Positions 12,401-63,913 of a stretch of DNA of 64,000 nt are shown here, one piece after another. The notes under the pieces are model-generated. The model saw nothing but the letters and a program-made list of their open reading frames with translations, was not told the origin of the DNA and ran no database searches. The first letter of the stretch is position 1; every line of letters begins with the position of its first letter. The DNA is taken from NCBI GenBank assembly GCA_002269645.1, contig NIVC01003836.1:1-64000 (forward strand), in the 5' to 3' direction. The translations under genes and the position numbers were made by a program. This DNA is from Macrostomum lignano (Eukaryota).

Positions 12401-15400
12401 TCCGACTCTCTGATGCCTCTTCGAGAGCTCCAGCTACCAGGAAGTTCTCAAATGACTTGATCCACCTTGCCCATGGCACAGGAGGTTCGCCTGGTACTGG
12501 TTGAAACTCCGCTGGGTACGGGAGTCCGCTCGTCGCCATTTGTTGTGTTCTAGTTGATTGATTAAATTCAATTCAGTTGGAGACACTTGAGTCTCGCTCA
12601 ATATATTTATACTCATGTGCACGTTGAAAACAGTGTTACGCAATCGAAACAACGATACCATGATTGAACGCACGATGCATATAAGGTAATTGAACAATTC
12701 TAGCCTCAAAGTTAGTTAGTTACAACACCTAGGCCTGATGCACAGTCACTACACCGTACTTGCGTACTCCCGTACTTGTGTACTCCCGTACTTGCGTACT
12801 CCCGTACTTGCCCGTCTCCGACTGCTCGTTGGCCACATTTTCGCTTCTTTTCATTGGCTGACACCGACATTCTGTCTGTCATTGCACTTTTTGAATGTGT
12901 TCGACAAATTAATTACCCTGGCCTTGGCGCCTGGTTCGAAATTGTTGCGAACGAAGAGCGCCGACAGAGCCTGGTTCATGCCCCACCGCACGGTCTCCAG
13001 GCAGTCAGTCGCTGCGTCGTCACCACCACTGCCGCCGTCGACGCCAATTGTGAGCCCGTTGCTGGGCCAAACTATTCGTCGGTAGGCGGCAAATCTGAGC
13101 CGGTACTCGCCGCTCAGATCCCATTGGAAGAAGGCGATCAGGGTCCAGGTGAGGTAGTTGTTCATCTTTCTGCTCGGGGTGCGGCCAATGAAAAAAATTA
13201 GTCTCTTCCAAAAGCTCGAAACACCTCGAAACTTCCTAACCTGGAAACTTCCCAACCATGGAAACTTCCCAATCTGGAAACTTCCCAACTTTAAAACTTC
13301 TCAACCTTGAAGCTTCCCAACCTGGAAACTTCCCAACCTTGAATCTCCCAACCTTGAATCTCTCAACCTTGAATCTCTCAACCTTGAATCTCCTAACCTT
13401 GAATCTCCCAACCGTGAATCTCCTAACCTTGAATCTCCCAACCTTGAATCTCCTAACCTTGAATCTCCTAACCTTGAATCTCCCAACCTTGAATCTCCTA
13501 ACCTTGAATCTCCCAACCGTGAATCTCCTAACCTTGAATCCCCCAACCGTGAATCTCCTAACCTTGAATCTCCCAACCTTGAATCTCCTAACCTTGAATC
13601 TCCCAACCGTGAATCTCCTAACCTTGAATCTCCCTACCTGGAAACTTCCCAACCTTAAAACTTCCCAACCTTAAAACTTCCCACCCCGAAACTTCCCAAC
13701 CTTGAATCTCCCAACCTCGAAACTTAATTTTAGTCTAAAACGACGTGAATGGCGTCTAATCAGACTCAATCTGCAGTCTGGTAAATTAAAACTCGAAAAC
13801 TGCGTTTTCTCAATATCTCTGAGTGCAGACTCAGCGTTTCATTAAACTTTTTAATCGGCCTTTTCTCAATAGACCAACTTTACCGATTGAAGTCAGTGGG
13901 GCTGCCTCTGCGCATGGAGTCCAACAGGTCCCGCAGCTGGTCAACATAATACCAGTCAGTCACCAGCACCTGGGTGTCGTTTCTTATCACCAGACCTGGC
14001 TGGTAGATTTCAGCCAGGTAGGCTCGGAAGTCAAAGTAAGACGAAATTCTATCAGTGAGATCGCTGATTTTCGCTAAGTTGGCCGGATGGTCGGCGGGTT
14101 GCTCGGGAAGGCTGGCGTGCTGCAGGACGGCCTCGTGAGTCTGCGGAGTTCGAGGGATGCAAGTTTGAGCTGAAATTCTTACTGAAGTGACAATAAAACG
14201 GAGGAATTCCCTGTTGTAAGAAAATTCCCCGATAGTGGAATGGCAAGAGGGAATTCCCATCTTACTGAACCTTAATGGTATGATAGCAAGGGGAATCCCC
14301 ATCTGAACCCATCTTAAATAGTGTGATAGCAAGGGGAATCCCCATCTGAACCCATCTTAACAGTATGATAGCAAAAGGGAATCCCCATCTGAACCTATAT
14401 CTTAACAGTATGATAGGAAAGGGGAATTCCCATCTAAACCCATTTTAACAGTATAATAGCAAAGAGGAATTTCCAATCGGAACCCATCTTAACGGTATGA
14501 TAGCAAGGGGGAATTCCCAACTGGGCCCATCTTAACGGTATGATAGCAAGGGACAGTAGAATGCCCATAGAATTCCCATCTGGACAGTAGAATGGCAAGG
14601 CGGAATTCCCATTAATTTCGTTTTAAAATCAAGTTTCTTCCTATTAAGCTGAGATGCATTTAATTTTCTTAGGTTTATTCTCTACTTCTTAAACTACTGC
14701 CAGTAGCAAGCAGCGCTTTCTGAGCTTCCATTTCAAAATCCCTCACCAGCAGCAGCTGCTCCTCAACGTAGAGCACATCGTTGGCAAATGTCTCAACTCG
14801 AGCTGTCTGATTGGTCATCGCCGCGTCTCTCAACAGCATGCCGGCCACGTCCTTGATCAGGCTGCGGTACAGCTCCTTCTCCTAAATTATTTGAAAAAAA
14901 TTTTTTCGTATTTTCATAGAAAATGTGGTCTACTTTGCGACTACTTTGTACTAAAATATCAACAATGAGACTTACATGACGGACGTACATCGCGTCGCTT
15001 CGAGAGTTCATGCCAACCTAAATTATAGAGTGAGTTTTGTCTCTGTTTTCTGGGAACTTATTGAGAATCTCTGATTGAGAATCACTCACCCGAGAATCCC
15101 TCACCTGCGAATCTCTTACCTGAGAATATCTCACCTTAGAATCTCTCACCTGAGAATCCTTCTCCCGAGAATCTTTCACCTGAGAATCTCTCACCTGGGA
15201 ATCTCTCACTTGAGAATCTCACACAAAGAACCTCCCACTTGGGAATCTCTCACCTGAGAATCTCTCACCTGAGAATCTCTCACTTGAGGATCTCTCACCT
15301 GAGAATCTCTTTGCACTTGAGAATCTCTCACCTGAGAATCTCTCACTTGAGAATCTCTAACCTGAGTATCTCTCACCTGAGAATCGCTCACCTGATAATC

Positions 15401-21673: not shown

Positions 21674-24088
21674 ATGAGCTTCAAAGACAGTTTGGAAGAT
21701 TCTAAAGTGGAGCAGCAAGCTGACAGCGAAATTGGGCAGGTGAGAGAGGCTTGTATTTGCTGGAATTGACCTGTTGCTTCACCGGCTTCCTGTGAGATTT
21801 CTGACAATCTGTATCTTTTGGCGTCATGTACTGATCTACTGACATCATGTACTGATCTTCTGACACCCTGTACTGATCTTCTGACACCCTGTACTGCTCT
21901 TCCGACACCCTGTACTGCTCTTCTGACACCCTGTACTGCTCTTCTGACACCCTGTACTGCTCTTCTGACACCCTGTACTGCTCTTCTGACACCCTGTACT
22001 GCTCTTCTGACACCCTGTACTGCTCTTCTGACACCCTATACTGCTCTTCTGACACCCTATACTGCTCTTCTGACACCCTGTACTGCTCTTCTGACACCCT
22101 GTACTGCTCTTCTGACACCCTGTACTGCCGTCGAACCCCCCGAAGGTGCTGCTGCACGGCGTGTCGCTGGCGTCGCTGCGCCTTAACGGTGAGGAGCGGC
22201 TCTGCCTGGCCCAGATCTCCGCCCAGCTGCTCTCCGGCCACACATACAACGACATTCACAACCGACGCGTCGCTCTGGGCATCACCTGCGTCCAGTGCAC
22301 CCCGCGCCAGTTGGACAGCCTGCGCCAGGCCAGCGCCATGCCAGCCAGCGCCAAGCGCTGCGGCACGATCACGCGGCGCGAGGCCGAACGCCTGGTCCGC
22401 TCCTTCCTAGGCGAGCCGGAGCGGCCGCGCCTGCCGCCTGGTTACAAATTCAATGTCGGCCACGCCTGCGGCTGGGGCTGCCGGGGCAGCTTCTGGCCGG
22501 AGCGGTACACCAGCTCCAGGGCCAGGTGGGTGCCATTAAATTTTATTTAAGGGGGCGCCATTTTATTTGAGGGGGCGCCATTTTATTTGATGGGGTGCCA
22601 TTTTATTTGAGGGGGCGCCATTTTATTTGATGGGGTGCCATTTTATTTGAGGGGGCGCCATTTTATTTGAGGGGGCGCCATTTTATATGAGGGGCGCCAT
22701 TCTATTTGACGGGGCGCCATTCTATACGAAGGCGCCATGCTATACGACGGGCGCCATTCTATACGAAGGGTGCCATTTTATCTATGGGGCCCTATTTCAT
22801 TTGAGGGGGCGCCATTTCATTTGGGCGCGCATTTAAGTTTAGGGACGCCATTTTATATGAGGTGCGCCATTCTATCTGAGGGGGCGCCATTCTATCCAAG
22901 GGGCGCTATTCTATACGAGGGGCGCCATTCTATCCAAGGGTCGCCATTCTATACGAGGGGCGCCCTTCTATTTGAGAAAGCGCCATTTTATTTGAGGGGC
23001 GCCATTCTATACGAGTATGAGGGGCGCCATTTCATTTGAGGGGCGCCAGAGCTACAGTGTAATTGGTTACCAAATACCAACTGACTGGGGGTGGCTGGCC
23101 CCCATGGCAACATAAAAGCCAATACTTTAGTAACCAATCACTGCCCTCAGGTGCGTGATGTGCAGCCAGTGCCGGCAGTTCTTCTCCCCGAACAAGTTCA
23201 TCTTCCACTGCCACCGCCCGGAGGACTCCGAGTCGGCCAGAGTGGCCGAGTTCCGCCAGCCGGATGCGGCGAACTTCAACGCCTGGCGAAGGCACCTGGC
23301 GCTGACGGACCCGGAGCCGAGCAGCGAACTGCTGCACAACTGGGAGGACGTCAAGGCGCTGTTCAACGGCGGCTCGCGGCAGAGCACCGCCTCTGGCAAG
23401 GTTGGTCGCATGCCCCACGATTCACAAACACGAGGGGCAACTTCCAAGGCGCAGCAGAGAGTGTTCACGCCTGATGATTAGAAAGTCAGGGCTGCTGTAC
23501 ACCCTGTGTGAGCGTGTGTGCCTGCATGCGCATCAGTGCTCAGGGAGCAGCGGAACTTCATTCACAAGCTCTCCATTGCAAACGATTGCTTCATTTCAGC
23601 CCGGCAGTCCAACAGCGGAGCAGCGGCAGGGATCGACCGCCGCCGCCGCCACCGGCGCCCCAGACAGCAACGACAGCAGCAGCAGCAGCAGCAGCCAGGG
23701 CGGCAGCATCTGCGGTGAGATGGCCGGCAACGGCGCAGCAGTTATCGGCGAAGAGCCGCCGCCGAAGATCTCGCCAGCTGCGGTGGCGTCGCCGCTGATG
23801 TGGGCCCAGCTTCTCATGCGGGCGGGCGCTACTCAGGGGCTGCTGCAGCCGCCCTGGCCGCTTGGACCGACTCCGCCTCCGCCGCCGATGCCGATGCTGA
23901 TGCCGATGTCGATGCCGCTGCCAATGCCGCTGCCCGTCCCGCTGTCGCCGCCCCACCCGGCCATGTACTTTGGCTGCCCGCTGGTCGGCCGGGACAGTCC
24001 GGCCGGACAATCCGGTAATCTCCGTGGTCTGAAGAGGCGCCTTAGCGACCACTCCATCGAGGCCATTATGGGCGGCTCCGGCGTTTGA
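21674..24088 (+). CDS. SKOR: SKI family transcriptional corepressor (SKOR1/2, fussel/CORL), about 394 aa
   Basis: Exons 21674-21739, 22146-22525, 23151-23400 and 23600-24088, with consistent phases. EIGQ|VLLHG..ERLCLAQIS..IHNRRVALGITCVQCTP..CGWGCRGSF.P.RY.SSRAR|CV.C..C..FFSPNKFIFH.H..QPDAANFNAWRRHL..WEDVKALFNGGSR is the SKOR DHD/SAND signature. The start ATG is inferred; a TATA-like tatattaaag lies near 21550. Confidence 0.92.
21825..22128. repeat. 21-bp minisatellite (ctgacaccctgtactgctctt)n in SKOR intron 1
   Basis: Tandem units ending about 17 nt before the acceptor. Confidence 0.93.
22545..23045. repeat. Degenerate minisatellite of about 20 bp (ttttatttgagggggcgcca)n in SKOR intron 2
   Basis: Tandem, progressively diverging units. 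Confidence 0.9.
23465..23535 (+). mobile_element. SINE central-domain fragment in SKOR intron 3
   Basis: gcctgatgattagaaagtcagggctgctgtacaccctgtgtgagcgtgtgtgcctgc. Confidence 0.65.
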
Positions 24089-27000
24089 AATTTCTATTAC
24101 AGTTTTTACGAGTAGTGTCGAACAAAACCAATTTGGTGACTATTTTTATTGATAAAAAATTTTTTTCAATGTCATCGAGTTTCATATCGGCTTCGTAAAT
24201 AAGTACAGGACGCAAAGATTTGCTGTTCTGCACAGCGCCGAATGGGGTTTGGCCATAGACAAAGTTGTTCGAAAAACATACTATGAATACAGTAAATATC
24301 TCGATAAACTTGTTAGCTAGTGCACCTTAGATGAAGCACGCTGCGCTTTCTTCTTTTGCAACTCGAACAGCAACTGAGCAGCCTCAGTTAGTGCAGGAGC
24401 TTGTACCCGGTGCAGCAATTCTCAGGAACCAAGCAGACCGCAAGTACTGCCAAACTGGGACTCGAGCAGACTCATAACAGAACATCATGTGCCAATTGTC
24501 ATGTCCTGCAGCAAGCCTATAGCCTAAATTGATGCTTTATTTGATTACTATTATTGGCCATGTAGGCTTTGCCAAAATATTTGGTTATCTTTAGTTTCCC
24601 TGTGCTTTTTCCTCTTGCATTACTACTTTTATTAGTTCAGTAGCCAATTAGAGATGTTATTTACTAGCTAAATGAGACGAGGAGTGCTGCACTGCTTCGG
24701 TCTGTTCTGCTTTTTTTCCTATTCAAACTTTTAGATTCAAATAAACTCGTGTGAGGCGCCAAGTTGTACCCACTTTACCTTTGGCAACAATTTTCATCAG
24801 GTTGTTCTATATTTTTCTGTCTACCAGTAGTAAGTAGTAAGTAGTATAAGTAACTAGTGCAAAAGACTGCTCATATGAGTGAGCGGCTGTTATAAAAAAT
24901 GACCGTGTAAATAGAATATAATGCACACATAAAAACGCACAGTGCAGGCCAAAGCAATTATTAAAATATACGAAACAAGGACTACTTAAGTATCGTTTAT
25001 AGAAGGACGCTGCACTCGCGGTTCGTGTAATTTTTTTTGAAGGCCAATTTTCGCCGAAAAATACATTAACGAGATACAAAAAATTCACGATTTTCATCTT
25101 CAATGGCTTGCTCAGACTGACTACAACCCTGCTGAAAAGAAAAAACTGCTGAAACTTATCAAAAAGACCTAGTGTATTCGCTCCTCTATTGTATTTCGCC
25201 AAGTTAGTGTCCTTGACACGTTTACTTTTAAATACTTCGTATTTTTTCGAGGGTTTTCAATTCTGTAATGTTAAATGTTAAAGGTTGGATTAAAGTGTTA
25301 GTTTCTCTCAATAATCAGTAGTTTCTTTAGCATTCTATGATGACTGCTTTCTATGTCTTTATTTTTTTGGTAAATTTAAATTAGCTATAGACATTCTATA
25401 TTAAATGTTAGTCTATACCCTGGCTATGCCTGATATATAATAATATCTAGGGCCTACTATGCTTTTTTAGCATGTTCTACAAAAATGTTGTGTAGAAAGG
25501 ACCTACTGATTAGTTTATGAGTAGATCGTTATAAAGTATTATTCTTAATTTGAAGGTAGATAGATATTAGATACTTGCATATTGTATAGAAGGTACTAAT
25601 TTTACTATTCTGTCAAATATCTGTAGATTAGGCTTCTTAAACGGTTCTACTGGATACAAAAGTTCTATTTTCAGACTTGTCTTGAAACTTTATATTTTAT
25701 TTAAATGATAGGCCTAACAACATATTGAATTTATTTCTGCTGTTTGGAGAGCAGTTTTTTAACCTAGTCTAGTTTAATGGAACCAAGATATATTCAATAC
25801 TCAGGCCTTGCATTGAATTTAAAATATAAATATTTATATATAGAAAGTGATTCTAAAGGAAAATGCGTATAATAGACTTTAGAAGACAAATTTTCAACTT
25901 TAGTAATACTATTGAAGTGATTTAGTATAGAATTGATTATATTGGATTTTTGAGAAATCCGTGACATTCTATCAACACACCGAGTTCGTATAAAACTTGA
26001 ACACCCATTGTACACTTAGACACCTCTAATTTAAACAAACGAAGTGGACACTGGAAAATATCGAAATATCCAACCAAAAATGCAATAAGCCAAAATCGGA
26101 GGCAACATAGCTCGTAGAATTGAAGCGAACATTGTTAATTGATTGAGCATGTAATTTGACCCATAGTCCATGGTTGTCCATGTTTTATACAGACCCAATT
26201 CACATTCACGTCATTGAATATGCTTATGCTTTCATAAGTTGGTTTATGCATCTGTTGCTGCTTTCATACGTTGGTTTAAACATTTGTTGCTGCTTTCATA
26301 AGTTGGTTTCTGCATTTTACTGCTGTTGCCTACCCAATAGTTGCCACAGTTTCTATACACTATACACTATACACAGTCTTATATTTGCAGCCTTACATAC
26401 ATATTTGCCTTACTGTAGCTATCAATTGAGATTAAAGTACAATGAGCTGCTGTGCAACAAGCAACCAGTTCAGTTCAACATTTTTTGTTTCCAGTCCAAC
26501 AACGATACATCGATTGTTATCAGCACTGGCATTGTGCCAGTTTCTCTGCTTTTGCTCTTTGTTATTTTATTGTTGAAAAGATCAGGGATGGCTTTTGAAA
26601 AGTACAGACTGACGGGCTTCGTTCTTTGTTAATCTCATCTCATTTTAATTGGATTACATTAGCTCAATTGTCGGAATTATCCTTTAAATATCCTAGCTTT
26701 ATTGTTCTATAATAAAGAAGGGGGTAACAGTACCTTGCTGTACATTTCTCGCGAATACATGTAGTTGCAGCCGAAACTGTTCACTCATCTAAAAGAGGAA
26801 TAAATTCTGAGCAACCCCGTGAAAAAACTAGACCTCTACATGCAACCATTTAAAAATAACAGCATTTTGAAAAATGGCCTTCAAAAAAATCTACACCATT
26901 CGGGAGTGCAGCGTCCTTCTACTTAAGTAGTCCTTGATACGAAATTAATAATCAAGTTTGTTTAAATGAAGTTATCTGAGAGTTACAGGGTCGACGTGTC

Positions 27001-34942: not shown

Positions 34943-35190
34943 GGGATTGCCATCATAAACTCGAAAAATCACATCGTCGAAAACAAGGCTCCATCACAAG
35001 CTCGAAAAGGCACAAGCTCTAACCCTAACCCTAACCCCAAGGCACAAACCCTAACCGTAACCCCAACCCTAACCTAACCCTAAACTAACCCTAAAGGCAC
35101 AAGCTCTGACCCTAACCCTATTCGAGCTTGTGATGGTGGTTGCTAAATCAGTTTTCGACGATGTGATTTTTCGAGCTTATGATGGCCCCC
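34943..35190. mobile_element. MITE-like element with internal degenerate (TTAGGG)n telomeric repeats
   Basis: Inverted repeats ccatcataaactcgaaaaatcacatcgtcgaaaac / gttttcgacgatgtgatttttcgagcttatgatgg, plus an inner pair ccatcacaagctcgaa / ttcgagcttgtgatgg. Internal ccctaaccctaa runs. The 8-bp direct flank CCAAACAA occurs on both sides. Confidence 0.7.
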
Positions 35191-36184
35191 CCAAACAAGG
35201 ACAGAGTCGCAATCATGTAAACACTTACAGTTCGAGTTTGAAACCGATGTTTCTCAAGATCAATTAAACCCCTCCGTCAGGAAATGAAATTGTTGTCTTT
35301 TGCGCGTTTATTGCCGTGCTGGCTAAGAGCGCGAAACTTTTGGTTTGGGGTGGCGAGCAGATCGAATGAGGCCACAAAAAAAGAGAAGAAATGCTCAGCT
35401 GAGCAGAGTGCTGCTGCTGTAGCTCTTGTGTTTATAAGCAGTAGGCGAAAATAAGAGAGAAGGTACTGAAAAATTGTGCACACACACTGTCGAAGCTTCT
35501 CTGCTCCAAGTGAAAGAGAATTCTGCTTGGTCTTCCAAAAGAGACTCTCCAAAAGGTGTATCATCGGTAAGAGACAGAGCTCAAATTCTCAGCCAATGAG
35601 TATACGGAATGCTTGCTATTTCCATGTTCCTACACTGAGTAAGCTGTTATTTTAATACCATGACACGGCAGATGCGCTCTTAAAGTAGCCATGAACTCAA
35701 ATCTGACAAATTTGTGTAATTATAGTGTTGTACAGATTGCCTGCTGTTGTGATAGCACCATCGGCACATTGCAGCTCTGCTTTTGTGGGTGCATTGTGTC
35801 CACTATGTATGAAACCTCTATTGGTGGGAACATTAGAGCAAAAAGTGAATGATGAGCTGCAAAACGTATAATGATATCAACCTTAGACAATCGCTCGACT
35901 CAGTAGGTCACAATCCTGGAAAACCACCTGCCACAGGTCATGTTTCACAGATCACCTATCTATCACGGAAGAGCGATACTGGATAGTTACATGTACAGAA
36001 TTTTGTTTACAAGGCAATTAATGTTATTTTATGATGAAGTCAGTTCCTATTTGATTACACGTTTATTTCGTGCGATAATGACATGACTGAGTGATTAAAA
36101 TGAAATTTAAAATCAAACCGTCACCCGTCAGTCAAGGATGTACCGCATCAGTCAGTTTAAAGACCCAATGACCACACCAGCCTC

Positions 36185-37646
36185 CTAATCAGTGCCGCTG
36201 GTGTTGCAGCTCACGTGGTACCAGGTGATGGCATCCATCAGGTTCGGGTCCGTGCCCTTCACGCACTGGCAGTCGGCGCCTCTCACCTTCATGGTGGCTC
36301 CCGGCTCGTAGAACACATTGCGACCCTCGGCCTCGTTCCACACCTCGCAGCCATTGAGGCGGCACACCCACTCGGTCTGGTCGCTGCGCCGGCGGCCAAG
36401 GATGTAGGCGAAGCCGCACCTGCACAGGTCGTTGCCGACCGTCTTCTCGGCGCCGTACGTGTCGCACGGCTCACCGCAGCTGGCCACGGCGAACAGGCTG
36501 CGGTTTGCGGGGTGGGGGTTAGTGTCTGGTACAGGACTTCCATTGTCCCTGTTGGACAGGTGTCTGATACAGCTGACTATCATTGTCATCTGTTGGACAG
36601 GTGTCTGGTACAGCTGACTATCATTGTCACCTGTTGGACAGGTGTCTGATACAGCTGACTATCATTGTCCCCTGTTGGACAGGTGTCTGATACAGCTGAC
36701 TATCATTGTCACCTGTTGGACAGGTGTCTGATACAGCTGACTATCATTGTCACCTGTTGGACAGGTGTCTGATACAGCTGACTATCATTGTCACCTGTTG
36801 GACAGGTGTCTGATACAGGACTTCCAGTGTCTCCTGTTCGACAGGTGTCTGATACAGGACTTCCAGTGTCACCTGTTGGACAGGTGTCTGATACAGCTGA
36901 CTATCATTGTCACCTGTTGGACAGGTGTCTGGTACAGCTGACTTCCAGTGTCACTTGTTGGACAGGTGTCTGGTACAGGACTCCAGTGTCACTTGTTGGA
37001 CAGGTGTCTGGTACAGGACTTCCAGTGTCACCTGTTGGACAGATGTCTGGTACAGGACTTCCAGTGTCACCTGTTGGACAGGTGTCTGGTACAGCTGACT
37101 TCCAGTGTCACTTGTTGGACAGGTGTCTGGTACAGGACTTCCAGTGTCACCTGTTGGACAGGTGTCTGGTACAGGACTTCCAGTGTCACCTGTTGGACAG
37201 GTGTCTGGTACAGCTGACTTCCAGTGTCACTTGTTGGACAGGTGTCTGGTACAGGACTCCAGTGTCACCTGTTGGACAGGTGTCTGGTACAGGACTTCCA
37301 GTGTCACCTGTTGGACAGGTGTCTGGTACAGCTGACTTCCAGTGTCACTTGTTGGACAGGTGTCTGGTACAGGACTCCAGTGTCACCTGTTGGACAGATG
37401 TCTGATACAGGACTCCCATTGTCACCTGTTGGACAGGTGTCTGATAAAGGACTCCCACTGTCACCTGTTGGACAGGTGTCTGATACAGCTGACCTCCATT
37501 GTCACCTGTTGGACAGGTGTCTGATACAGGTGTCAGTCCCAGAAGTCCTAGTCACGTCTCCTACTCATCTAAAATCCAACCAGTTAAACAAAAGAAGCTC
37601 ACCATGTCACCAGGACAGCCGCAGCTCCGAAGGTCTTGGCAATCAT
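36185..37646 (-). CDS. Small secreted cysteine-rich protein, 118 aa (left arm, intact)
   Basis: TATAAAA at 37755-37749. Exon 1 37646-37603 and exon 2 36497-36185 (phase 2) give MIAKTFGAAAVLVTCLFAVASCGEPCDTYGAEKTVGNDLCRCGFAYILGRRRSDQTEWVCRLNGCEVWNEAEGRNVFYEPGATMKVRGADCQCVKGTDPNLMDAITWYHVSCNTSGTD*. AATAAA lies near 36062-36067. Confidence 0.8.
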
Positions 37647-38335
37647 ATCGATGGCTGTGGAGTTTCTGCAGAATATTTCTCTGTAGAAGGCTTTACTTGT
37701 CTCGTTGCAGAGCAAAGTTTGTCTCAATGGGCAGCAGGACCTGCTTATTTTTATAGACTCTGGCACGTTGACAATGCACTGCGTTATTTGGGGAGCAGGT
37801 CGGTTCTTTAATTATTTAGTAATTGTTTTCATTGCATAATCAGGTACCTCGATTTCTAAATATTCAGAATGTATTCAGAGAACACAATAAATTGCTAGTC
37901 ATAGCCAACACAGATACATGTAAGAAAACATAATGGATTGCTAGACTAGCCAAACACAGATAGGAGAGAAGAATGGATTGCTAGACTCTGCACAAGATTA
38001 CAAAAGAGATTATTAACAAATTCGTTTTTGCTTGTCCTTCAAAGAACTAAAACTTTATTTAAAGATTATTAAAATTCTTTAAACTGATAGATCTGCCCGA
38101 TCCAGCACTTGCTGCACACTATTTAGAAATCGAGGTACCCTGATTATGCAATGAAAACAATTGATAAATAATTAAAGAAGCAACCTGCCCATCCATAACG
38201 CAGTGACGTGTCAACGTGCCAGAGTCTATAAAAATAAGCAGGCCCTGCTGCCCATTGAGACAAAATTAGCTCTGCAACGAGACAAGTAAAGCCTTCTACA
38301 GAGAAATATTCTGCAGAAACTCCACAGCCATCGAT

Positions 38336-40004
38336 ATGATTGCCAAGACCTTCGGAGCTGCGGCTGTCCTGGTGACATGGTGAGCTTCTTTTGTTTAACT
38401 GGTTGGATTTTAGATGAGTAGGAGACGTGACTAGGACTTCTGGGACTGACACCTGTCCAACAGGTGACAATGGAAGTCCTGTATCAGACACCTGTCCAAC
38501 AGGTGACAATGAAAGTCAGCTGTATCAGACACCTGTCCAACAGGTGACAATGATAGTCAGCTGTATCAGACACCTGTCCAACAGATGACAATGATAGTCA
38601 GCTGTATCAGACACCTGTCCAACAGGTGACAATGAAAGTCAGCTGTATCAGACACCTGTCCAACAGGTGACAATGGAAGTCAGCTGTATCAGACACCTGT
38701 CCAACAGGTGACAATGATAGTCAGCTGTACCAGACACCTGTCCAACAGATGACAATGATAGTCAGCTGTATCAGACACCTGTCCAACAGGTGACAATGAT
38801 AGTCAGCTGTATCAGACACCTGTCCAACAGGTGACAATGATAGTCAGCTGTACCAGACACCTGTCCAACAGATGACAATGATAGTCAGCTGTATCAGACA
38901 CCTGTCCAACAGATGACAATGATAGTCAGCTGTACCAGACACCTGTCCAACAGATGACAATGATAGTCAGCTGTATCAGACACCTGTCCAACAGGTGACA
39001 ATGATAGTCAGCTGTATCAGACACCTGTCCAACAGGTGACAATGAAAGTCAGCTGTATCAGACACCTGTCCAACAGGGGACAATGATAGTCAGCTGTATC
39101 AGACACCTGTCCAACAGGTGACAATGATAGTCAGCTGTATCAGACACCTGTCCAACAGGTGACAATGGAAGTCAGCTGTATCAGACACCTGTCCAACAGG
39201 TGACACTGGAAGTCCTGTACCAGACACCTGTCCAACAGGTGACAATGATAGTCAGCTGTACCAGACACCTGTCCAACAGGTGACAATGAAAGTCAGCTGT
39301 ATCAGACACCTGTCCAACAGGTGACAATGAAAGTCAGCTGTATCAGACACCTGTCCAACAGGTGACACTGGAAGTCCTGTATCAGACACCTGTCGAACAG
39401 GAGACACTGGAAGTCCTGTATCAGACACCTGTCCAACAGGTGACAATGATAGTCAGCTGTATCAGACACCTGTCCAACAGGTGACAATGAAAGTCAGCTG
39501 TATCAGACACCTGTCCAACAGGGGACAATGATAGTCAGCTGTATCAGACACCTGTCCAACAGGTGACAATGATAGTCAGCTGTACCAGACACCTGTCCAA
39601 CAGATGACAATGATAGTCAGCTGTATCAGACACCTGTCCAACAGGGGACAATGGAAGTCCTGTACCAGACACTAACCCCCACCCCGCAAACCCGCAGCCT
39701 GTTCGCCGTGGCCAGCTGCGGTGAGCCGTGCGACACGTACGGCGCGAGAAGACGGTCGGCAACGACCTGTGCAGGTGCGGCTTCGCCTACATCCTTGGCC
39801 GCCGGCGCAGCGACCAGACCGAGTGGGTGTGCGCCTCAATGGCCTGCGAGGTGTCGAGGCCGAGGGTCGCAATGTGTTCTACGAGCCGGGAGCCACCATG
39901 AAGGTGAGAGGCGCCGACTGCCAGTGCGTGAAGGCACGGACCCGAACCTGATGGATGCCATCACCTGGTACCACGTGAGCTGCAACACCAGCGGCACTGA
40001 TTAG
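38336..40004 (+). pseudogene. Mirror copy of the secreted Cys-rich gene (right arm), with apparent frameshifts in exon 2
   Basis: TATAAAA at 38227. Exon 1 (38336-38379) is identical to the left copy. Exon 2 (39698-40004) has several 1-3-nt indels relative to the left copy (e.g. ggcgcgag vs ggcgccgag, gaaggcac vs gaagggcac). These may be consensus errors. Confidence 0.6.
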
Positions 40005-40706
40005 GAGGCTGGTGTGGTCATTGGGTCTTTAAACTGACTGATGCGCGTACATCCTTGACTGACGGGTGACGGTTTGACTTTAAATTTCATTTTAATCACT
40101 CAGTCATGTTATTTTTTATTGTATATTGTGTAGGCTATATACTAGCAATCTACTGTTGTTTACTGTCCGTGAATTAGTCACTTCCTATCAGTGCTTAAAT
40201 ATAATGAGTATGATTAATTGATTTGATAATACCATAGTAATAAATAGAATAATAATAAACAATACTATCCATTGCCAAGTATATAATTATAATAGTACGT
40301 ATTTAAAGTAAATTTAAACGAAAGTCAAGGTCAAAATGCTTAAATTTTAATCACAGCATCAGTAAAAGCAACGAATCCGTAGTTAGTGTAAACTTGCCTC
40401 TATATATTTTATTGCTCAATTTTGTTTAACTGCAGCAAAAAAAAATAACAAAGAAGCGATAAGGCAGCAGGTTACAAAAGTATAAAATTTGAGACTAGAA
40501 GCTTTGATTAGGATTTGATAATTGACTTCTTTAGTAAAAATCAAGTTTGACAGCACAAGCGGCTAAAAATAACAATATTGAAATTATTGAAAAAAATGGA
40601 TTATTGCACGTTTAAGATACAGAAATTTCATTTTAGAGAAATTTTATCAACAAATATTCGTTCATTGCACAGAAAACACTTGGATAGCTGGACCGTTATG
40701 GCACAT

Positions 40707-43700: not shown

Positions 43701-46700
43701 TGCCTCCCGTGTAACAATCAGTCTCAAAAACTGCACAGGTTTTTATTGTTGCCATTTTAGCAGTTTCAAGATACTATTTAAAAAAGGTTCATAATTTTTA
43801 TACCTGGCTTCTAATTAGTATCTCTTCATTCAATGGATATTGAGATAGACACTTGGGATGTCTTGACAGAAAACTAATTATACCTTATCTTCATATCTCC
43901 TGTCTCACCTATCTTTCCCCTAACTCTCCCCTACCTCTCCCCTATCTCTCCCCTACCTCTCCCCTACATCTCCCCTACCTCTCCCCTACATCTCCTCTAC
44001 CTCTCCCCTACCTCTCCCCTAACTCTCCCCTACCTCTCCCCTACATCTCCCCTACCTCTCCCCTACCTCTCCCCTACATCTCCTCTACCTCTCCCCTACC
44101 TCTCCCCTAACTCTCCCCTACCTCTCCCCTACATCTCCCCTACCTCTCCTCTACCTCTCCCCTACCTCTCCCCTACCTCTCCCCTACCTCTCCTCTACCT
44201 CTCCCCTACCTCTCCTCTACCTCTCCCCTACCTCTCCCCTACCTCTCCCCTACATCTCCTCTACCTCTCCCCTACCTCTCCCCTACCTCTCCCCTACCTC
44301 TCCCCTACATCTCCCCTACCTCTCCTCTACCTCTCCCCTACCTCTCCCCTACCTCTCCCCTAACTCTCCCCTACCTCTCCCCTACCTCTCCCCTATCTCT
44401 CCCCTACCTCTCCCCTACATCTCCCCTACATCTCCCCTACCTCTCCCCTACATCTCCCCTACATCTCCCCTACATCTCCCCTACCTCTCCCCTACATCTC
44501 CCCTACATCTCCCCTACATCTCCTCTACCTCTCCCCTACCTCTCCCCTACCTCTCCCCTATCTCTCCCCTACCTCTCCCCTATCTCTCCCCTACCTCTCC
44601 CCTACATCTCCCCTACCTCTCCCCTACATCTCCTCTACCTCTCCCCTACCTCTCCCCTACCTCTCCCCTACCTCTCCCCTACATCTCCCCTACCTCTCCT
44701 CTACCTCTCCCCTACCTCTCCCCTACCTCTCCCCTAACTCTCCCCTACCTCTCCCCTACCTCTCCCCTATCTCTCCCCTACCTCTCCCCTACATCTCCCC
44801 TACATCTCCCCTACCTCTCCCCTACATCTCCCCTACATCTCCCCTACATCTCCTCTACCTCTCCCCTACCTCTCCCCTACCTCTCCCCTACATCTCCCCT
44901 ACCTCTCCCCTACATCTCCCCTACCTCTCCCCTACCTCTCCCCTACCTCTCCCCTACATCTCCTCTACCTCTCCCCTACCTCTCCCCTACCTCTCCCCTA
45001 ACTCTCCCCTACCTCTCCCCTATCTCTCCCCTACCTCTCCCCTATCTCTCCCCTACCTCTCCCCTACATCTCCCCTACATCTCCCCTACATCTCCTCTAC
45101 CTCTCCCCTACCTCTCCCCTACCTCTCCCCTACATCTCCCCTACCTCTCCCCTACATCTCCCCTACCTCTCCCCTACCTCTCCCCTACCTCTCCCCTACA
45201 TCTCCTCTACCTCTCCCCTACCTCTCCCCTACCTCTCCCCTAACTCTCCCCTACCTCTCCCCTATCTCTCCCCTACCTCTCCCCTATCTCTCCCCTACCT
45301 CTCCCTTACATCTCCCCTACCTCTCCCCTACTCTCCCTACCTCTCCCCTACCTCTCCCCTACCTCTCCCCTACCTCTCCCCTACATCTCCCCTACCTCTC
45401 CTCTACCTCTCCCCTACCTCTCCCCTACCTCTCCCCTAACTCTCCCCTACCTCTCCCCTATCTCTCCCCTACCTCTCCCCTACATCTCCCCTACATCTCC
45501 CCTACCTCTCCCCTACATCTCCCCTACATCTCCCCTACCTCTCCCCTACATCTCCTCTACCTCTCCCCTACCTCTCCCCTACATCTCCCCTACCTCTCCC
45601 CTACATCTCCCCTACCTCTCCCCTACCTCTCCCCTACCTCTCCCCTAACTCTCCCCTACATCTCCCCTATCTCTCCCCTACCTCTCCCCTACATCTCCCC
45701 TACATCTCCCCTACATCTCCTCTACCTCTCCCCTACCTCTCCCCTACCTCTCCCCTACCTCTCCCCTACCTCTCCCCTACCTCTCCCCTACATCTCCTCT
45801 ACCTCTCCCCTACCTCTCCCCTACCTCTCCCCTACATCTCCCCTACCTCTCCCCTACATCTCCTCTACCTCTCCCCTACATCTCCCCTACCTCTCCCCTA
45901 CATCTCCCCTATCTGTCCCCTACCTCTCCCCTACCTCTCCCTATCTGTCCCTATCTGTCCCCTATATTTCCCTTATCTCTCCCCTATCTCTCCTCTACCT
46001 CTCCCCTACCTCTCCCCTACCTCTCCCCTAACTCTCCCCTACCTCTCCCCTATCTCTCCCCTACCTCTCCCCTATCTCTCCCCTACCTCTCCCCTACATC
46101 TCCCCTACCTCTCCCCTACATCTCCTCTACCTCTCCCCTACCTCTCCCCTACCTCTCCCCTACCTCTCCCCTACATCTCCCCTACCTCTCCTCTACCTCT
46201 CCCCTACCTCTCCCCTACCTCTCCCCTAACTCTCCCCTACCTCTCCCCTATCTCTCCCCTACCTCTCCCCTACATCTCCCCTACATCTCCCCTACCTCTC
46301 CCCTACATCTCCCCTACATCTCCCCTACATCTCCTCTACCTCTCCCCTACCTCTCCCCTACCTCTCCCCTACATCTCCCCTACCTCTCCCCTACATCTCC
46401 CCTACCTCTCCCCTACCTCTCCCCTAACTCTCCCCTACCTCTCCCCTACATCTCCTCTACCTCTCCCCTACCTCTCCCCTACCTCTCCCCTACCTCTCCC
46501 CTACATCTCCCCTACCTCTCCTCTACCTCTCCCCTACCTCTCCCCTACCTCTCCCCTAACTCTCCCCTACCTCTCCCCTACCTCTCCCCTATCTCTCCCC
46601 TACCTCTCCCCTACATCTCCCCTACATCTCCCCTACCTCTCCCCTACATCTCCCCTACATCTCCCCTACATCTCCTCTACCTCTCCCCTACCTCTCCCCT

Positions 46701-49547
46701 ACCTCTCCCCTACATCTCCCCTACCTCTCCCCTACATCTCCCCTACCTCTCCCCTACCTCTCCCCTACCTCTCCCCTAACTCTCCCCTACCTCTCCCCTA
46801 TCTCTCCCCTACCTCTCCCCTACATCTCCCCTACATCTCCCCTACATCTCCTCTACCTCTCCCCTACCTCTCCCCTACCTCTCCCCTACCTCTCCCCTAC
46901 CTCTCCCCTACCTCTCCCCTACATCTCCTCTACCTCTCCCCTACCTCTCCCCTACCTCTCCCCTACATCTCCCCTACCTCTCCCCTACATCTCCTCTACC
47001 TCTCCCCTACATCTCCCCTACCTCTCCCCTACATCTCCCCTATCTGTCCCCTACCTCTCCCCTACCTCTCCCTATCTGTCCCTATCTGTCCCCTATATTT
47101 CCCTTATCTCTCCCCTATCTCTCCCCTTTTTTTACCTTATCTCCCCTATCTTTCCCTTATCTCCTCTATCCTTCCGGTTCCCTACCTCTCCCCTCTTTTC
47201 CCTCTCTCTCCTCTATCTACGATCTCTCCTCATCTCTACTCAATCCAATCCCCTCTCCTCCAACCCTCTCTCGCAGACTGCTCACCTCCATCTCATCCGA
47301 TCCCCGCCTGTCGTACAGGGTGACGGCCAGCTCGGTGCCGCAGCCGAACACGGAGCCGTCCGCAAGCAGCGGCAGCAGGTGATAAGCGGCATCGCCGCAG
47401 GCGGCCGTCACGGTGACGCGAAGCGGACGAGATTTTGCTCGCAACGCGGACGTCTCCGCGTCCAGTTTGGCCTTGTAGCGAGTGTTGTCATTGGCAACCG
47501 CCCGCTGCTGGGGACTCGTCATGTCCGACTCGAAGTCGTAGTAAGCTGATTGAATGATGTAAAGAATAGTAAAAAGAGTGGCTGGATTGTTGTGTCGTGG
47601 CAAGGAGCCCGTAAAAGGGCCGTTTTTCTGACTAACTAAAAAGGGGTATTTTTTCCTACTACTCTACTTAAAGTAGTGCAGTTCATAAATCATTCGTATA
47701 ATGTATTTTGGAATCACGTGACATTTTGGGGTTTCTAATTTATTGATTGTGTAATAATTTATTGTTGGATGTCAAATATAAGCGCGGGTTGTCCTAAGGG
47801 AGCTCTTGTTCTTGTTTACCGGCAAAAGTCTTACCTGCCTAAGTACTCGTTTGTTTTTCCTGTGTTAGTCTATCGAGACACCACATGGATACTCGTAGTT
47901 AGCGAATCAGCAGGTGACTTTGGAAACTGTACATCTGCTCTGAATTTCTCATACACCTTTATTCCTTCTTTCCTTGGGAGGAAAGCGTTGACCCTTCATA
48001 GGCTCTGTAATAAGCTCTTTAAGTCTTGCGCCACTCAAGTCAAGAACTCGCTTTGAAATCATTGCTGCAAAAATTCTGTATGAAACTTTGCGGCATCTTT
48101 GTTTGGGTTTTCCAATTTGGAAGCTGCAGACATCTGACCCATTCTGACGCTTAAAAGACACCAGAAACGTCGCCACCGGGGGTGACAGGGGGACAGGGGC
48201 CAATGCTTTGCCCGCCACCCCACCTTTGTTGACCTGTTATGGAAATCAATAATTTTGCTTCAGGGCAACAAAAATGGTGCCTACGGCGCTAAAATGAGTG
48301 CCTGTGGCGCTAAAATGAGTGCCTGTGGCGCTAAAATGAGTGCCTGTGGCGCTAAAATGAGTGCCTGTGGCGCTAAAATGAGTGCCTGTGGCGCTAAAAT
48401 GCGTGCCTGCGGCGCTAAAATGAGTTCTTGTGGCGCTAAAATGAGTGCCTGTGGCGCTAAACTGCGTGCCTGCGGCGCTAAAATGAGTGCCTGCGGCGCT
48501 AAAATGAGTGCCTGTGGCGCTAAAATGATCGCTGACAACACCGATTCTGAAAATAATGTACATTTAGGAATTTAGTCGCGTACATGAACATGCAGAATTC
48601 TTGGCTTTGTCCCCCCCACCATAAAATCCATGGCGAAGCCCCTGAAAGACACCCAGTTCAAAGTTCAACACACGAAGTTGGCTAGATCAAGGCACCTAAA
48701 AAATCTCGAAGACTTGATACGAGTTGAGTAGAGTTTTTCAATTTGAGTACTTCAATCTCACCTTTAGCATATTCCTGGAATTCGTTGGCGCCCCCAATCA
48801 GGACACCTTTGCCGCCTTGGTTCACCAGCTCTCGCCACACGATAGGGGATTTGTACTGATGCCAGCCGCGCTCCTCGCAGCACTGACGGGACCAGTCCTG
48901 GCGAAATAAAATGGCCAATGCAGACTTCTTTTGGCTTAAACAGAATTTTATATCAAAGTTTATAGAAGGACCCGCCAATTGTGTAAATTCACAGTATTTT
49001 ACAACAAGGTGCGCCCACCTAGTTTATAAATCTATGTAAATTTATTGAGCGTCGCTTCTTTCAATTTTTTTCTTGACAAACTTGTAAGTTCAACTCGAAC
49101 AAAACGCATAGTCTTTTTTCGTTTTGTTTGAATTCGGAAGTCCAGAAGGTGACATGGCTATTGTGAGTTTTGACGATTTTCTCACCGGCCATTCCTCTGG
49201 AGTTTTCACGATCTTCGTCAATTTGAAGGCTGGCAAATTCTTGGCTAAATAATCGGCCAGTAGTTCTACTCTGGCATAGTACGGACAGTCTGATGAGCCT
49301 AAAATGTATTATTTTGTTTTTATGTTTGATGATGTGCGGCGTAAATATCCTTTATGCAAAATCAGTTAGTGACGAAAATTCAATGATTACTCGTATTAGC
49401 AAAGTATGATTGAATATTTTGAATACATTTATAAAAGGATACGAATCACTAAATTTTTACATAATTTACATCAATTTTTGGATATATATGGCATTACTGA
49501 GTATTCGCAACTGAGAAAAACTTACCAGCAATAACAATTTTTGCCAT
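40707..49547 (-). CDS. MDH1B: Putative malate dehydrogenase 1B, with several frameshifts in exons 5-6
   Basis: Exons 49547-49526 (MAKIVIA), 49298-49186 (GSSDCPYYARVELLADYLAKNLP), 48897-48762 (SPIVWRELVNQGGKGVLIGGANEF), 47545-47286 (RPLRVTVTAA..YHLLPLL..VFG), about 43315-43060, 42513-41978 (VIWGD..GAVTGP..DQEWV..TSLGIASK), 41555-41425 (WYGIPEGVVFSFPV), and possibly 40760-40707. The N-terminal extension is diagnostic for MDH1B rather than MDH1. Confidence 0.85.
40805..41411. repeat. 15/16-bp minisatellite (catcgggatcaggtga)n
   Basis: About 38 tandem units directly after the penultimate MDH1B exon. Confidence 0.96.
41630..41958. repeat. 33-bp minisatellite (gggagaactcagtcacattggtacaggatcagt)n, intronic
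   Basis: About 10 tandem units. Confidence 0.93.
42575..42881 (+). mobile_element. tRNA-derived SINE copy B (in an MDH1B intron, antisense to the gene)
   Basis: ggggccgtagcccagtg..ggctcgattccaagtgcagtc; body as in copies A and C, with two internal deletions. Confidence 0.75.
43378..43542. mobile_element. Short MITE-like element with TIRs aggggcgtagccag / ctggctaagccccc
   Basis: 14-bp imperfect TIRs and two internal copies of ggcgcccctggtgctaaa. Confidence 0.65.
43910..47205. repeat. 3.3-kb 11-bp polypyrimidine satellite (ctctcccctac)n in an MDH1B intron
   Basis: About 300 units with variants (tacatc, tatctc, taactc) arranged in higher-order blocks. Confidence 0.97.
48160..48644. mobile_element. 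MITE-like element containing a 21-bp array (ggcgctaaaatgagtgcctgt)n
   Basis: Left end cagaaacgtcgcca and right end tggcgaagcccctg; array at 48285-48530. Confidence 0.55.
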
Positions 49548-57886: not shown

Positions 57887-59512
57887 GGGTCTACGACGTT
57901 TGCCTGCGGGACGTTTGCCAGCCGACGTTTGCCTGCGGGACGTTTGCCAGCCGACATTTGCCAGCCGACGTTTGCCAGCCGACGTTTGCCAGCGGGACGT
58001 TTGCCAGCCGACGTTTGCCTGCCGGACGTTTGCCTGCGGGACGTTTGCCAGCCGACGTTTGCCAGCCGACGGTTGCCAGCCGACATTTGCCCGCCGACGT
58101 TTGCCAGCGATACGTTTGCCAGTCGGACGTTTGCCTGCCGGACGTTTGCCAGCCGACGTTTGCCAGCCGACGTTTGCCTGCCGGAAGTTTGCCAGCCAAA
58201 ATTTGCTAGCCAATATAAAGCCAGTCAGTGAAAAATTTGATACTGAAATATTCGCAGTTTAGCGGTTTGACAAAAACCGTTTTTACTCCAACTTTCTGAC
58301 GGTTATTCGCATATATACAAGTTTGAAAGCAAAATATATAAATTATGCAATTTATATAGATTTACATCTAATATCCAGTTTAACAACGATTTTCTTTGAA
58401 TGTGAAAATATTGTTTACTTTTGACAATTTTGTATCGTTTTTCCCAGTTTGAGATGTTTGATTTTTGATGTGCGAAAGAAGACGCGCAGATTACAACGGG
58501 AATCTCCAGCGATTAAGTTATGAGGCAAACAAAAAGAGCTGCTGAGCGGTAATTCTGGCTCATATATTTCTCAGTTCATTGGGAGATCCAAAAGTAAGCA
58601 AATTGATTCCAATTCTGTTGTATTACTACTCAAGTAAGCCAGGAAACCGCGATCTCAACGTACATGTGTAGACGAGTCGAATGCGGTACGTTTGTATAGT
58701 AAGCTATATAGCTGAATAGCCAGACAAGCCGCCAGTAACAAGCTAGTAGGATAGCAAGCGCTAGACACTACGTATGCAAAGCTTAGTCATGCCAAGGACT
58801 ACTAAAGTAGTAGTACGCAGCACTCGAAATCTATGAAAAATGTTTTGAAGGCCATAGGGAGATAGGAAGTTTTCATCTTTTCAGCACAACAATTGTTATT
58901 GCTTTCATACGAGGCAAACCCAATGTTCATCTTTTGATATGTTGTGCCAAAATCGTTGTTAAACTAGATTTATATATAGTTAGATTTAGATTTTCTTAGA
59001 TTTTGATTTTCTAGATTTATACTATATTTATATATTTTGCTTTCAAACTTGTATACATGCGAATAACCGTCAAAAAGTTGGAGTAAAAACGGTTTTTGTC
59101 AAACCGCTAAACTGCGAATATTTCAGTATCAATTTTTTCACTGACTGGCTTTATATTGGCTAGCAAATTTTGGCTGGCAAACTTCCGGCAGGCAAACGTC
59201 GGCTGGCAAACGTCGGCTGGCAAACGTCCGGCAGGCAAACGTCCGGCAGGCAAACTTCGGCTGACAAACGTCCCGCTGGCAAACGTCGGCTGGCAAACGT
59301 CGGCTGGCAAATGTCGGCTGGCAAACGTCCCGCAGGCAAACGTCCGGCTGGCAAACGTCCGGCAGGCAAACGTCGGCTGGCAAACGTCCGGCAGGCAAAC
59401 GTCGGCTGGCAAACGTCCCACTGGCAAACGTCGGCTGGCAAACGTCGGCTGGCAAACGTCCGGCAGGCAAACGTCGGCTGGCAAACGTCCCGCAGGCAAA
59501 CGTCGCTATCCC
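57887..59512. mobile_element. Non-autonomous foldback/Mutator-like element, 1626 bp
   Basis: Inverted arms of about 500-550 bp, beginning GGG..CGACGTTTG and ending CAAACGTCG..CCC; each arm has an outer 14-15-bp minisatellite (gacgtttgccagcc) and an inner unique AT-rich part. 9-bp TSD GCCCGCAAC at 57878-57886 and 59513-59521. Confidence 0.88.
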
Positions 59513-60860: not shown

Positions 60861-61385
60861 ATGGTTGATTGTGTGGTGTTGAGCAGCAGCAAGAGCTACA
60901 TCAGGAGCCTGAGCAGTAGGTACAACTGCATCCAGGCTGGAACAGTAAGGAGGAGCTTCGGAGACCAGCTAGCGTGCTTCCGCTTCAACTTTGAAGGCGA
61001 AGATAGGGAGAGAGATAGAGAGCGAGATGGAATATTTTTGTACCACGCTTGGAGCAGAGAGCTGGAGAAAACTGCAGCCAGCATTCGCGTGCGGCTACCG
61101 TCAAAAGTGCACAAGTACTGCAGCGTCTACGCTGTGGCGGTAAGATTCAAAGACCCAGTCCAAGACAATTGGATGGGTTTCCTGGCCGAGATGGAGGACG
61201 AGTCTGCGGCAGCGAGGAGCAGCGGCCGCTATCACAGATGGGAGAAGCTCGAGGTGCCCGACTGCGGCACTAGCGACCCGATTGTGATCGTCAGCAGCCT
61301 ATCAGATGCTGATGAGCTGGGCCGAACACGCCCAGTAATTTATAATTTTTTTAAGGAAAACCCTGTTGTATTTTCTACAGAGTAG
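60861..61385 (+). CDS. Hypothetical protein, paralog 1 of an unrecognised family (174 aa)
   Basis: Open, GC-richer ORF that aligns end to end with 63356-63913 (YIR.L..Y.C...VR.S...Q.ACF.F, YHAW..EL, VR.P..VHK.C.VYAVAV.FKDP, W..F...ME......SSG.YH.WE.L). True start uncertain. Confidence 0.7.
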   Translation: MVDCVVLSSSKSYIRSLSSRYNCIQAGTVRRSFGDQLACFRFNFEGEDRERDRERDGIFLYHAWSRELEKTAASIRVRLPSKVHKYCSVYAVAVRFKDPVQDNWMGFLAEMEDESAAARSSGRYHRWEKLEVPDCGTSDPIVIVSSLSDADELGRTRPVIYNFFKENPVVFSTE

Positions 61386-63355: not shown

Positions 63356-63913
63356 ATGTTCCCAATCGTATTAAGCACTAATGAGACCTATATTAGACGA
63401 CTCGGCGACAAGTACGAGTGCACCTCTGCTGTCCAAGTGCGCTACTCACTCGATCAGCAAGTTGCATGCTTCCTCTTCCATCTGGACGATGAGGCGAGCG
63501 GAGAGCTTAGAAAGGTTCGCATGTACCACGCCTGGTGCAGCGAGCTGGACAGGAAGACGAAGCCCAACTTTACTGTGCGAGTACCGGCACGAGTGCACAA
63601 GCACTGCAAGGTGTACGCCGTGGCTGTCAAGTTCAAGGACCCGCAGAGCTGGCTAAAGTTTCAGCCGGACATGGAGAGGGACCGTCAGCAGCTGGAAAGC
63701 AGCGGCGCCTACCACTGCTGGGAGCTGCTGCCAGAAGGCAAAGTCTGCAACACGGCATCCAAAGACGAGAAAGATTATCCGTGCCCGATGATAATTGCCG
63801 CCATGATTGCCGAGAACTATCAAAGCCTGCGGTTGGACTTGTACACTGACGCCACTTGTGTATTCGTCCCTTCGTCTGATTCGGTCGATAACAGTAGTAT
63901 ATGCGCGAGTTAG
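63356..63913 (+). CDS. Hypothetical protein, paralog 2 of the same unrecognised family (185 aa)
   Basis: See paralog 1. Motif conservation combined with divergence elsewhere suggests coding constraint. Confidence 0.7.
   Translation: MFPIVLSTNETYIRRLGDKYECTSAVQVRYSLDQQVACFLFHLDDEASGELRKVRMYHAWCSELDRKTKPNFTVRVPARVHKHCKVYAVAVKFKDPQSWLKFQPDMERDRQQLESSGAYHCWELLPEGKVCNTASKDEKDYPCPMIIAAMIAENYQSLRLDLYTDATCVFVPSSDSVDNSSICAS

Follow-up and report, generated by a model that had tools for sequence, protein, structure and literature searches.

Head-to-head copies of a gene for a putative secreted protein in Macrostomum lignano: an inverted duplication with likely gene conversion between its arms

Introduction

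The Drosophila Hsp70Aa and Hsp70Ab genes at 87A are an inverted, divergently transcribed duplicate pair that evolves in concert, and the ampliconic palindromes P1-P8 of the human Y chromosome, whose arms range from 9 kb to 1.45 Mb, undergo gene conversion from arm to arm. The locus described here lies in a stretch of 64,000 nucleotides (nt) of the flatworm Macrostomum lignano (assembly GCA_002269645.1, contig NIVC01003836.1, positions 1 to 64,000), which we call the window. In it, two copies of a small two-exon gene for a putative secreted protein of 118 amino acids (aa) stand head to head in a palindrome of ~4 kb. We read it as a small inverted pair of duplicates that probably evolve in concert, and the phenomenon itself is well known. 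Judged from the assembled sequence, the palindrome is a genuine head-to-head duplication in this neopolyploid genome, and its presence on three paralogous contigs makes it possible to compare six copies of the gene, to ask which parts of the arms have stayed alike and which have drifted apart, and to separate the history of the locus from the faults of its assembly.

Structure of the palindrome

Local alignment of the right side with the reverse complement of the left delimits arms of 1786 bp and 1994 bp, with the gene on the minus strand in the left arm and on the plus strand in the right, around a unique spacer that is AT-rich (34% GC). The coordinates of all parts are collected in Table 1. 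Each arm has the same layout, which runs from a TATA box through ~100 nt to the ATG and the 44-nt exon 1, and then through a minisatellite intron and exon 2 to ~108 nt of 3' untranslated region (UTR). The unique parts of the arms are 95-97% identical when insertions and deletions (indels) are counted. In the alignment of the proximal part, 324 of 340 columns match, 10 hold substitutions and 6 hold gaps, and the differences are confined to the sequence upstream of the TATAAAAATA box or just past it; from arm to arm there is no difference in exon 1, in most of the 5' UTR or in the intron's first 70 nt. In that of the distal part, 475 of 488 columns match, 2 hold substitutions and 11 hold gaps. 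Tandem Repeats Finder places one minisatellite with a period of 41 nt in each arm; the left array holds ~25 units and the right 29-30, and the order of the variant units differs between them.

Table 1. Parts of the palindrome, in positions of the window
Feature	Position	Strand	Evidence or remark
Left arm (P arm), adjoining the PH-domain gene; intact gene copy	36077..37862	-	arm alignment; also on L001 and L003
Left 3' UTR, 108 nt within the arm	36077..36184	-	direct sequence reading
Left exon 2, 313 nt including the stop codon; residues 15-118; 65% GC	36185..36497	-	acceptor CCGCAG/C
Left intron, 1105 nt, GT..AG; 41/39-nt minisatellite at 36522-37530 (25 units)	36498..37602	-	
Left exon 1, coding part, 44 nt = MIAKTFGAAAVLVT + 2 nt	37603..37646	-	
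Left 5' UTR and promoter, P-type patch; TATA box TATAAAAATA at 37746-37755	37647..37862	-	
Spacer, unique, 257 bp	37863..38119	.	identical and in the same orientation on three contigs
Right arm (D arm); exon 2 scrambled in this contig only	38120..40113	+	arm and six-copy comparison
Right promoter and 5' UTR, D-type patch; TATA box at 38227-38236	38120..38335	+	
Right exon 1, coding part, same as left	38336..38379	+	
Right intron, 1318 nt; minisatellite at 38448-39672	38380..39697	+	
Right exon 2, 307 nt; five indel events and 0 substitutions against the other five copies	39698..40004	+	
Right 3' UTR, portion within the arm	40005..40113	+	

The palindrome on three contigs

We compared three contigs of GCA_002269645.1 (Mlig_3_7) at the copies g1, g2 and g3 of the neighbouring PH-domain gene Mlig033688. 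They are called L001, L002 and L003, of which L002 is the window's own contig, its reverse complement matching window positions 19467-44017 at 24551 of 24551 positions. Both arms are present on all three, together with a spacer that is 100% identical and in the same orientation, and unique flanks border the palindrome on both sides in each case. The promoter, exon 2 and 3' UTR of the left (P) arm are 100% identical on L001 and L003. Two gene models of the older ML2 assembly also run over the palindrome: P0001 (A0A1I8H5Q8) matches the copy on L003 and P0016 (A0A1I8ITQ0) the copy on L001, and both pass without interruption from an antisense exon 2 through the sense promoter, exon 1 and exon 2 to the PH-domain gene.

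Three paralogous copies exist of about 70-85% of Mlig_3_7, with a rate of single-nucleotide polymorphism of 2.2% (PMC10733133), and a palindrome found on three contigs fits such a three-copy genome. Since both arms and one identical spacer recur on each of these paralogous contigs, we infer that the duplication is older than the split of the three subgenomes. Its recurrence on three contigs and in the two ML2 models argues against a fold-back or chimeric artefact. A sequence-only reading of the window had proposed a palindromic pair with arms of about 1.8 and 2.0 kb and a 257-bp spacer, and had taken it for a real duplication rather than an assembly mirror; the arm alignment bears out the former, and the arm-specific differences shared by three contigs, together with the ML2 models, bear out the latter.

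As gene models, A0A1I8H5Q8 and A0A1I8ITQ0 themselves appear chimeric: an N-terminal part of no recognised identity precedes fused pieces that comprise antisense D-arm exon 2, translated sequence from upstream in the P arm, the gene for the secreted protein and the PH-domain gene.

What the arms share and where they differ

The same 118-aa protein is encoded by five of the six copies, the right arm of the window being the sole scrambled one, and exon 2 has no substitution in any of the six. Against this uniformity, the P arms of all three contigs have one state and the D arms another at 13 promoter positions, which fall in alignment columns 44-90, 147 and 150, and one site in the 3' UTR near the outer end of the arm, at 40110 in the D arm and 36079 in the P arm, is likewise arm-specific. 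Two arm-specific sites, at 38266 and 38269 in the D arm and 37716 and 37713 in the P arm, probably belong to the 5' UTR. Within the patch the D type holds TGACGT where the P type has TGCATT. Thus a promoter patch of 47 nt has diverged, yet ~600 nt of UTR, intron flank and coding sequence differ at 0-2 sites.

Intron length varies between 500 and 1318 nt across the six copies, and the maps of variant units (Table 2) show that the two ends of the arrays behave differently. The P arms share a 5' block, KLMNOFDPFDDF (KWMNOFXPFDDF on L003), and the D arms begin with S(C), so that the end of the array next to exon 1 is specific to the arm, whereas the motifs GEB and HI at the end next to exon 2 are found in both types of arm. 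In the window the two arrays match perfectly, and in register, over their final 231 nt.

Table 2. Variant-unit maps of the six arrays, and private changes in the non-repeat flank, on the three contigs
Contig	P arm	D arm	Private substitutions	Private indels
L001	KLMNOFDPFDDF-VCHAEAAGEB	SYZCUCUCUCHECHEAA	12	6
L002 (window)	KLMNOFDPFDDF-DQRFAHIAAAGEB	SCABCJEBAEBTBACGAJDECCHIACGEB	22	21 (16 single-base)
L003	KWMNOFXPFDDF-DQRFAGEB	SCUCHaGG	53	6

Gene conversion between the arms, of a polar kind, is the likeliest means by which they would be kept alike. An old duplication would have been followed by arm-to-arm exchange that homogenised the transcribed unique sequence and the end of the array next to exon 2, and the 47-nt promoter patch and the end of the array next to exon 1 would have escaped this exchange and remained specific to their arms.

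The repeat units have a character of their own. The hairpin CACCTGT-CCA-ACAGGTG is present in most of the 41-nt units, and so is CAGCTG, which gives the two arrays of the window 127 E-box hexamers in ~2.2 kb (46 CACCTG, 44 CAGGTG and 37 CAGCTG). The minisatellite was also considered as coding sequence and rejected: its units are 38-41 nt long, variable and not multiples of three, and the open reading frames (ORFs) in the arrays are frame-dependent repeats. Minisatellite-filled introns are in any case ordinary in this genome, since the window holds many arrays and simple and tandem repeats account for 15% of the M. lignano genome (Wudarski et al. 2017).

The scrambled exon 2 of the right arm

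Compared with the left copy, exon 2 of the right arm has five indel events (-1, -1, +1, -4 and -1 nt, net -6) and no substitution; residues ~32-95 fall into wrong frames, and no stop codon arises. The indels are private to the D arm of the window's contig. Private changes were also counted in 6.7 kb of non-repeat flank on the three contigs (Table 2), and NIVC01003836.1 has 3.5 times as many private small indels as its paralogous contigs. The left arm of the window has two private 1-nt deletions as well, one in a run of G and one in a run of C, and the indels within the arms are mostly in G/C runs. Natural decay normally yields far more substitutions than indels, and an exon with indels and without substitutions favours an error of the consensus. 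Mlig_3_7 was built from PacBio continuous long reads with Canu, polished with Pilon, and has 64% error-free bases according to REAPR (PMC5730564), and multi-locus mapping affects 93% of read pairs (PMC10733133). With so much multiple mapping, short-read polishing of a sequence present in six copies can be expected to fail. The right-arm indels are thus probably uncorrected PacBio consensus errors and not real decay. The excess of indels suggests a lower consensus accuracy of this contig, and frameshifts elsewhere in the window should therefore be treated with caution.

The gene and its ends

The left copy has a coding sequence of 357 nt with 87% GC at third codon positions (GC3). Exon 1 ends in the donor G/GTGAGC and the intron in the acceptor CCGCAG/ (the slash marks the exon boundary). 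The two-exon model is backed by homology, since the paralogue Mlig010735g1 has a single intron that matches in position and phase, inside a Cys codon of the signal-peptide-like region, and the model of that gene derives from the transcriptome-guided annotation of the assembly. At the Mlig010735 locus there is no inverted partner, and the intron, of 995 nt, contains no tandem repeat, so that palindrome and minisatellite are specific to the locus described here; nor is there an inverted partner among the called genes at the loci of the metagenomic relative P0005 and of Lineus. The two arms differ in their distance to the nearest polyadenylation signal. For the left arm an AATAAA lies at 36067..36062 on the minus strand, 10-15 nt past the arm end, and for the right arm at 40239, 126 nt past it, which points to the P arm as the probable parent of the pair. 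Scans for Rfam families and tRNAs over the whole window gave no matches.

Protein family and predicted fold

The protein has a hydrophobic N-terminus (MIAKTFGAAAVLVTCLFAVASC), as does Mlig010735, and after it nine cysteines that are all conserved with this paralogue; with such a signal-peptide-like start and so many cysteines the product looks secreted. An exhaustive search by HMMER, with the product of exon 2 as query, matched P0001 at 99% identity inside a model of 1024 aa, the paralogue (P0002) at 55% identity (E = 6e-33), and also P0006 and P0009 of Lineus and P0010 of Tubulanus. The relatives comprise Mlig010735, two neighbouring genes of Lineus longissimus, one gene of Tubulanus polymorphus and three proteins from metagenomes or read assemblies. 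Columns G49, C50, G66, C76, C78, G81, D83, L86, D88, H94 and C97 of the family alignment are invariant, and the consensus motif reads CRLNGC..PG..C.C..G(T)DPNLMD.ATLYH.KC. The ratio of nonsynonymous to synonymous divergence (dN/dS) from Mlig010735 is ~0.46, which indicates relaxed yet purifying selection.

No described family took in this protein. With hmmscan at E-values up to 10, Pfam has no family for the window protein or for P0002, P0017, P0018 and P0010; UniRef gives the name DUF4789 to a fragment in the paralogue's cluster, and this too had no Pfam match in the window protein or the tested relatives. The family profile matched no PDB sequence. A word-indexed protein search gave no match with the 118-aa query, and with the family alignment it gave only the query's own members P0007 and P0008. 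The literature search returned nothing on Mlig010735 and nothing relevant under DUF4789.

AlphaFold2 with the family alignment predicts an all-beta protein with a predicted local distance difference test score (pLDDT) of 78; a single-sequence model (pLDDT 57) was dropped in its favour. Foldseek against PDB found its best E-value with an FnI pair (0.07), which is not significant and speaks against a firm assignment of the fold, and a weak match to VWF C6 with a probability of 0.66 and a TM-score of 0.43 normalised by the target; normalised by query length, TM-scores were 0.25-0.34. Our best guess from the model is a small extracellular, disulfide-rich binding module with a shape like that of VWC or FnI.

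Alternative explanations

Several observations weigh against the account given so far. ML2 and Mlig_3_7 were built from the same PacBio reads, which makes them independent assemblies and not independent data. The transcriptome-guided annotation has no gene at the palindrome on any of the three contigs, and the 118-aa protein and three variants of it have no exact match in a collection of 15 billion proteins. The identity of the arms could stem in part from purifying selection or from locally low divergence, the latter because the contigs share 99.6-99.7% identity in the neighbouring flank. Finally, right exon 2 and its 3' UTR hold 7 indel events in 422 nt, ~5 times the background of the contig (21 in 6.7 kb), and one of the events in exon 2 is a deletion of 4 nt and not a change in a single-base run. 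Palindromes are known to arise falsely in long-read libraries, and this assembly is prone to errors; even so, it is very improbable that the palindrome is an artefact, whether of a fold-back or chimeric long read or of an inverted mis-join of two haplotypes. Such an event would have to explain three contigs with one and the same unique 257-bp spacer and unique flanks on either side, fixed arm-specific differences that recur on all of them in place of mirror-identical arms in one, six minisatellite arrays that all differ, and a second assembly with the same order. We give just as little credence to a foldback-type transposable element with tandem-repeat inverted termini, in which the gene would be incidental or captured. 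Tandem repeats do lie within the arms, and elsewhere in the window there is a second inverted repeat, non-coding, whose arms (57894-58343 and 59026-59505) contain a minisatellite, but each arm of the palindrome is a complete gene unit whose intron matches in position and phase that of a paralogue with neither palindrome nor minisatellite, the protein family is conserved in nemerteans, direct reading of the sequence flanking 36077 and 40113 reveals no target-site duplication, and the window and the fetched loci contain no copies beyond the three syntenic sites.

The remaining rivals accept the duplication and differ over the fate of its copies. That the right arm of the window is a true pseudogene, one of six redundant copies that decayed by small indels after the subgenomes split, is rather unlikely. 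The indels are indeed private to this arm and dense, the 4-nt deletion is among them, and with six copies of the gene present one would be dispensable; exon 2, however, has five to six indels beside no private substitution, the left arm on the same contig carries its own private deletions in G and C runs, the excess of private indels extends over the contig, and long reads were polished here with short reads that map to multiple loci. It is improbable that both arms are silent relics, with an ORF that looks conserved and transcription that has been lost. Such relics would go unannotated and would lack a matching protein in public collections, as is the case here, but five of six ORFs are intact and identical, the nine cysteines have outlasted the divergence to a paralogue of 55% identity, GC3 is high, the TATA box and splice sites are intact and the P arm has a nearby AATAAA as well, and annotation easily loses reads that map to six identical copies. 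Also doubtful is the proposal that the arms are regulatory variants actively kept apart, with the promoter patch and the half of the array next to exon 1 specific to the arm and everything downstream homogenised, in which case the minisatellite may be the zone where polar conversion tracts start or stop. If true, this would make the locus a compact natural case of regulatory subfunctionalisation that survives ongoing gene conversion. On balance, we are reasonably confident in the explanation taken as a whole, namely an inverted duplication with conversion between its arms and errors in the right one.

Implications

The results qualify several points of the sequence-only reading. The gene layout that it gave to each arm stands, whereas the right exon 2 is not intact, its five indels having been overlooked; the identical exon 1, the differing promoters and the arrays of different length and variant order are all seen again in the alignment and the unit maps. 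Its suggestion of a secreted product agrees with the N-terminus and the nine cysteines shared with the paralogue, and conversion from arm to arm would fit the pattern of shared and arm-specific sequence. To call the locus dosage-amplified is too strong: further copies do exist, on the two paralogous contigs, but there are two per subgenome and no third arm copy in the 64-kb window. Nor does 'rapidly evolving' suit a protein that is identical in five of six copies and has the dN/dS reported above. The reproductive, adhesive or toxin-like role that it proposed found no support: none of the three contigs has a called gene at the locus, and the large protein collection has no exact match.

For annotation, the gain is an unannotated gene in six copies and an unnamed family of cysteine-rich, putatively secreted proteins of macrostomid flatworms and nemerteans. 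For the assembly, two chimeric UniProt models (A0A1I8H5Q8 and A0A1I8ITQ0) are flagged, and uncorrected indels in multi-copy sequence of Mlig_3_7 are seen to be able to mimic pseudogenes. The three subgenome copies offer a small, clean natural replicate in which polar gene conversion and minisatellite turnover within a palindrome can be studied.

Other features of the window

The second inverted repeat has arms of ~450-480 nt that are 90% alike, each made of a 14-nt minisatellite (CGACGTTTGCCAGC) and ~130 nt of unique sequence, around an AT-rich spacer of 682 bp, and may be a foldback element or one like a miniature inverted-repeat transposable element (MITE). About 1 kb from the left arm, at 35019-35094, lies a short, degenerate interstitial telomere-type repeat, (CCCTAA)n interleaved with AAGGCACAAGC. 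Positions 43903-47127 are filled by ~294 copies of an 11-nt unit (TCTCCCCTACC) with a GC skew close to -1.

On the minus strand at 8638-12539 there is a retrotransposon, probably a long terminal repeat (LTR) element of the Ty3/Gypsy type and largely intact in appearance, whose two long ORFs contain RVT_1, RNase H, an integrase zinc-binding domain and rve. On the plus strand, 22146-22550 is an exon for a SKI/SNO/DAC Dachshund-homology domain (Pfam, E = 2e-28), and an ORF of 576 aa without a Pfam match runs in from the window start (4-1734). Two tandem ORFs at 60861-61385 and 63356-63913, also on the plus strand, encode 174 and 185 aa with 41% mutual identity (E = 1e-36); neither has a Pfam match, and they form an uncharacterised local gene pair.

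Comparison with known systems

Among the relatives of the gene, Mlig010735 (PAA68186.1) is closest: it belongs to the same family, with 55% identity and the same cysteine pattern, intron position and phase, and differs in standing outside any inverted pair and in having a repeat-free intron. The nemertean genes LOC135495358 and LOC135495360 (Lineus longissimus) and LOC141902683 (Tubulanus polymorphus) belong to the family at ~30% identity. Across the family, nemerteans included, the six cysteines of the C-terminal domain are invariant and the C-terminal motif is common, and the nemertean proteins are longer than that of M. lignano, with extra N-terminal regions. Like VWC and FnI modules, the M. 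lignano protein is small, cysteine-rich and, as predicted, all-beta with two sub-domains; its only Foldseek neighbours are FnI pairs and VWF C6, none of them significant, and it has no sequence match in Pfam or PDB.

As a duplicate pair, the locus resembles Drosophila Hsp70Aa/Ab in that two complete copies stand head to head around a short unique spacer, with near-identical transcribed sequence and a part of the upstream region that is free to differ. Unlike the Hsp70 pair, it has an intron with a hypervariable minisatellite, its product is an uncharacterised putative secreted protein, and it occurs in three subgenome copies that are known here from sequence alone. With the human Y palindromes P1-P8 it shares gene-carrying inverted arms that flank a unique spacer, and probably an identity between the arms above what the age of the structure would suggest. 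It differs from them in its scale, the arms being ~2 kb long with a single small gene each, and in the diverged patch that persists inside its arms.

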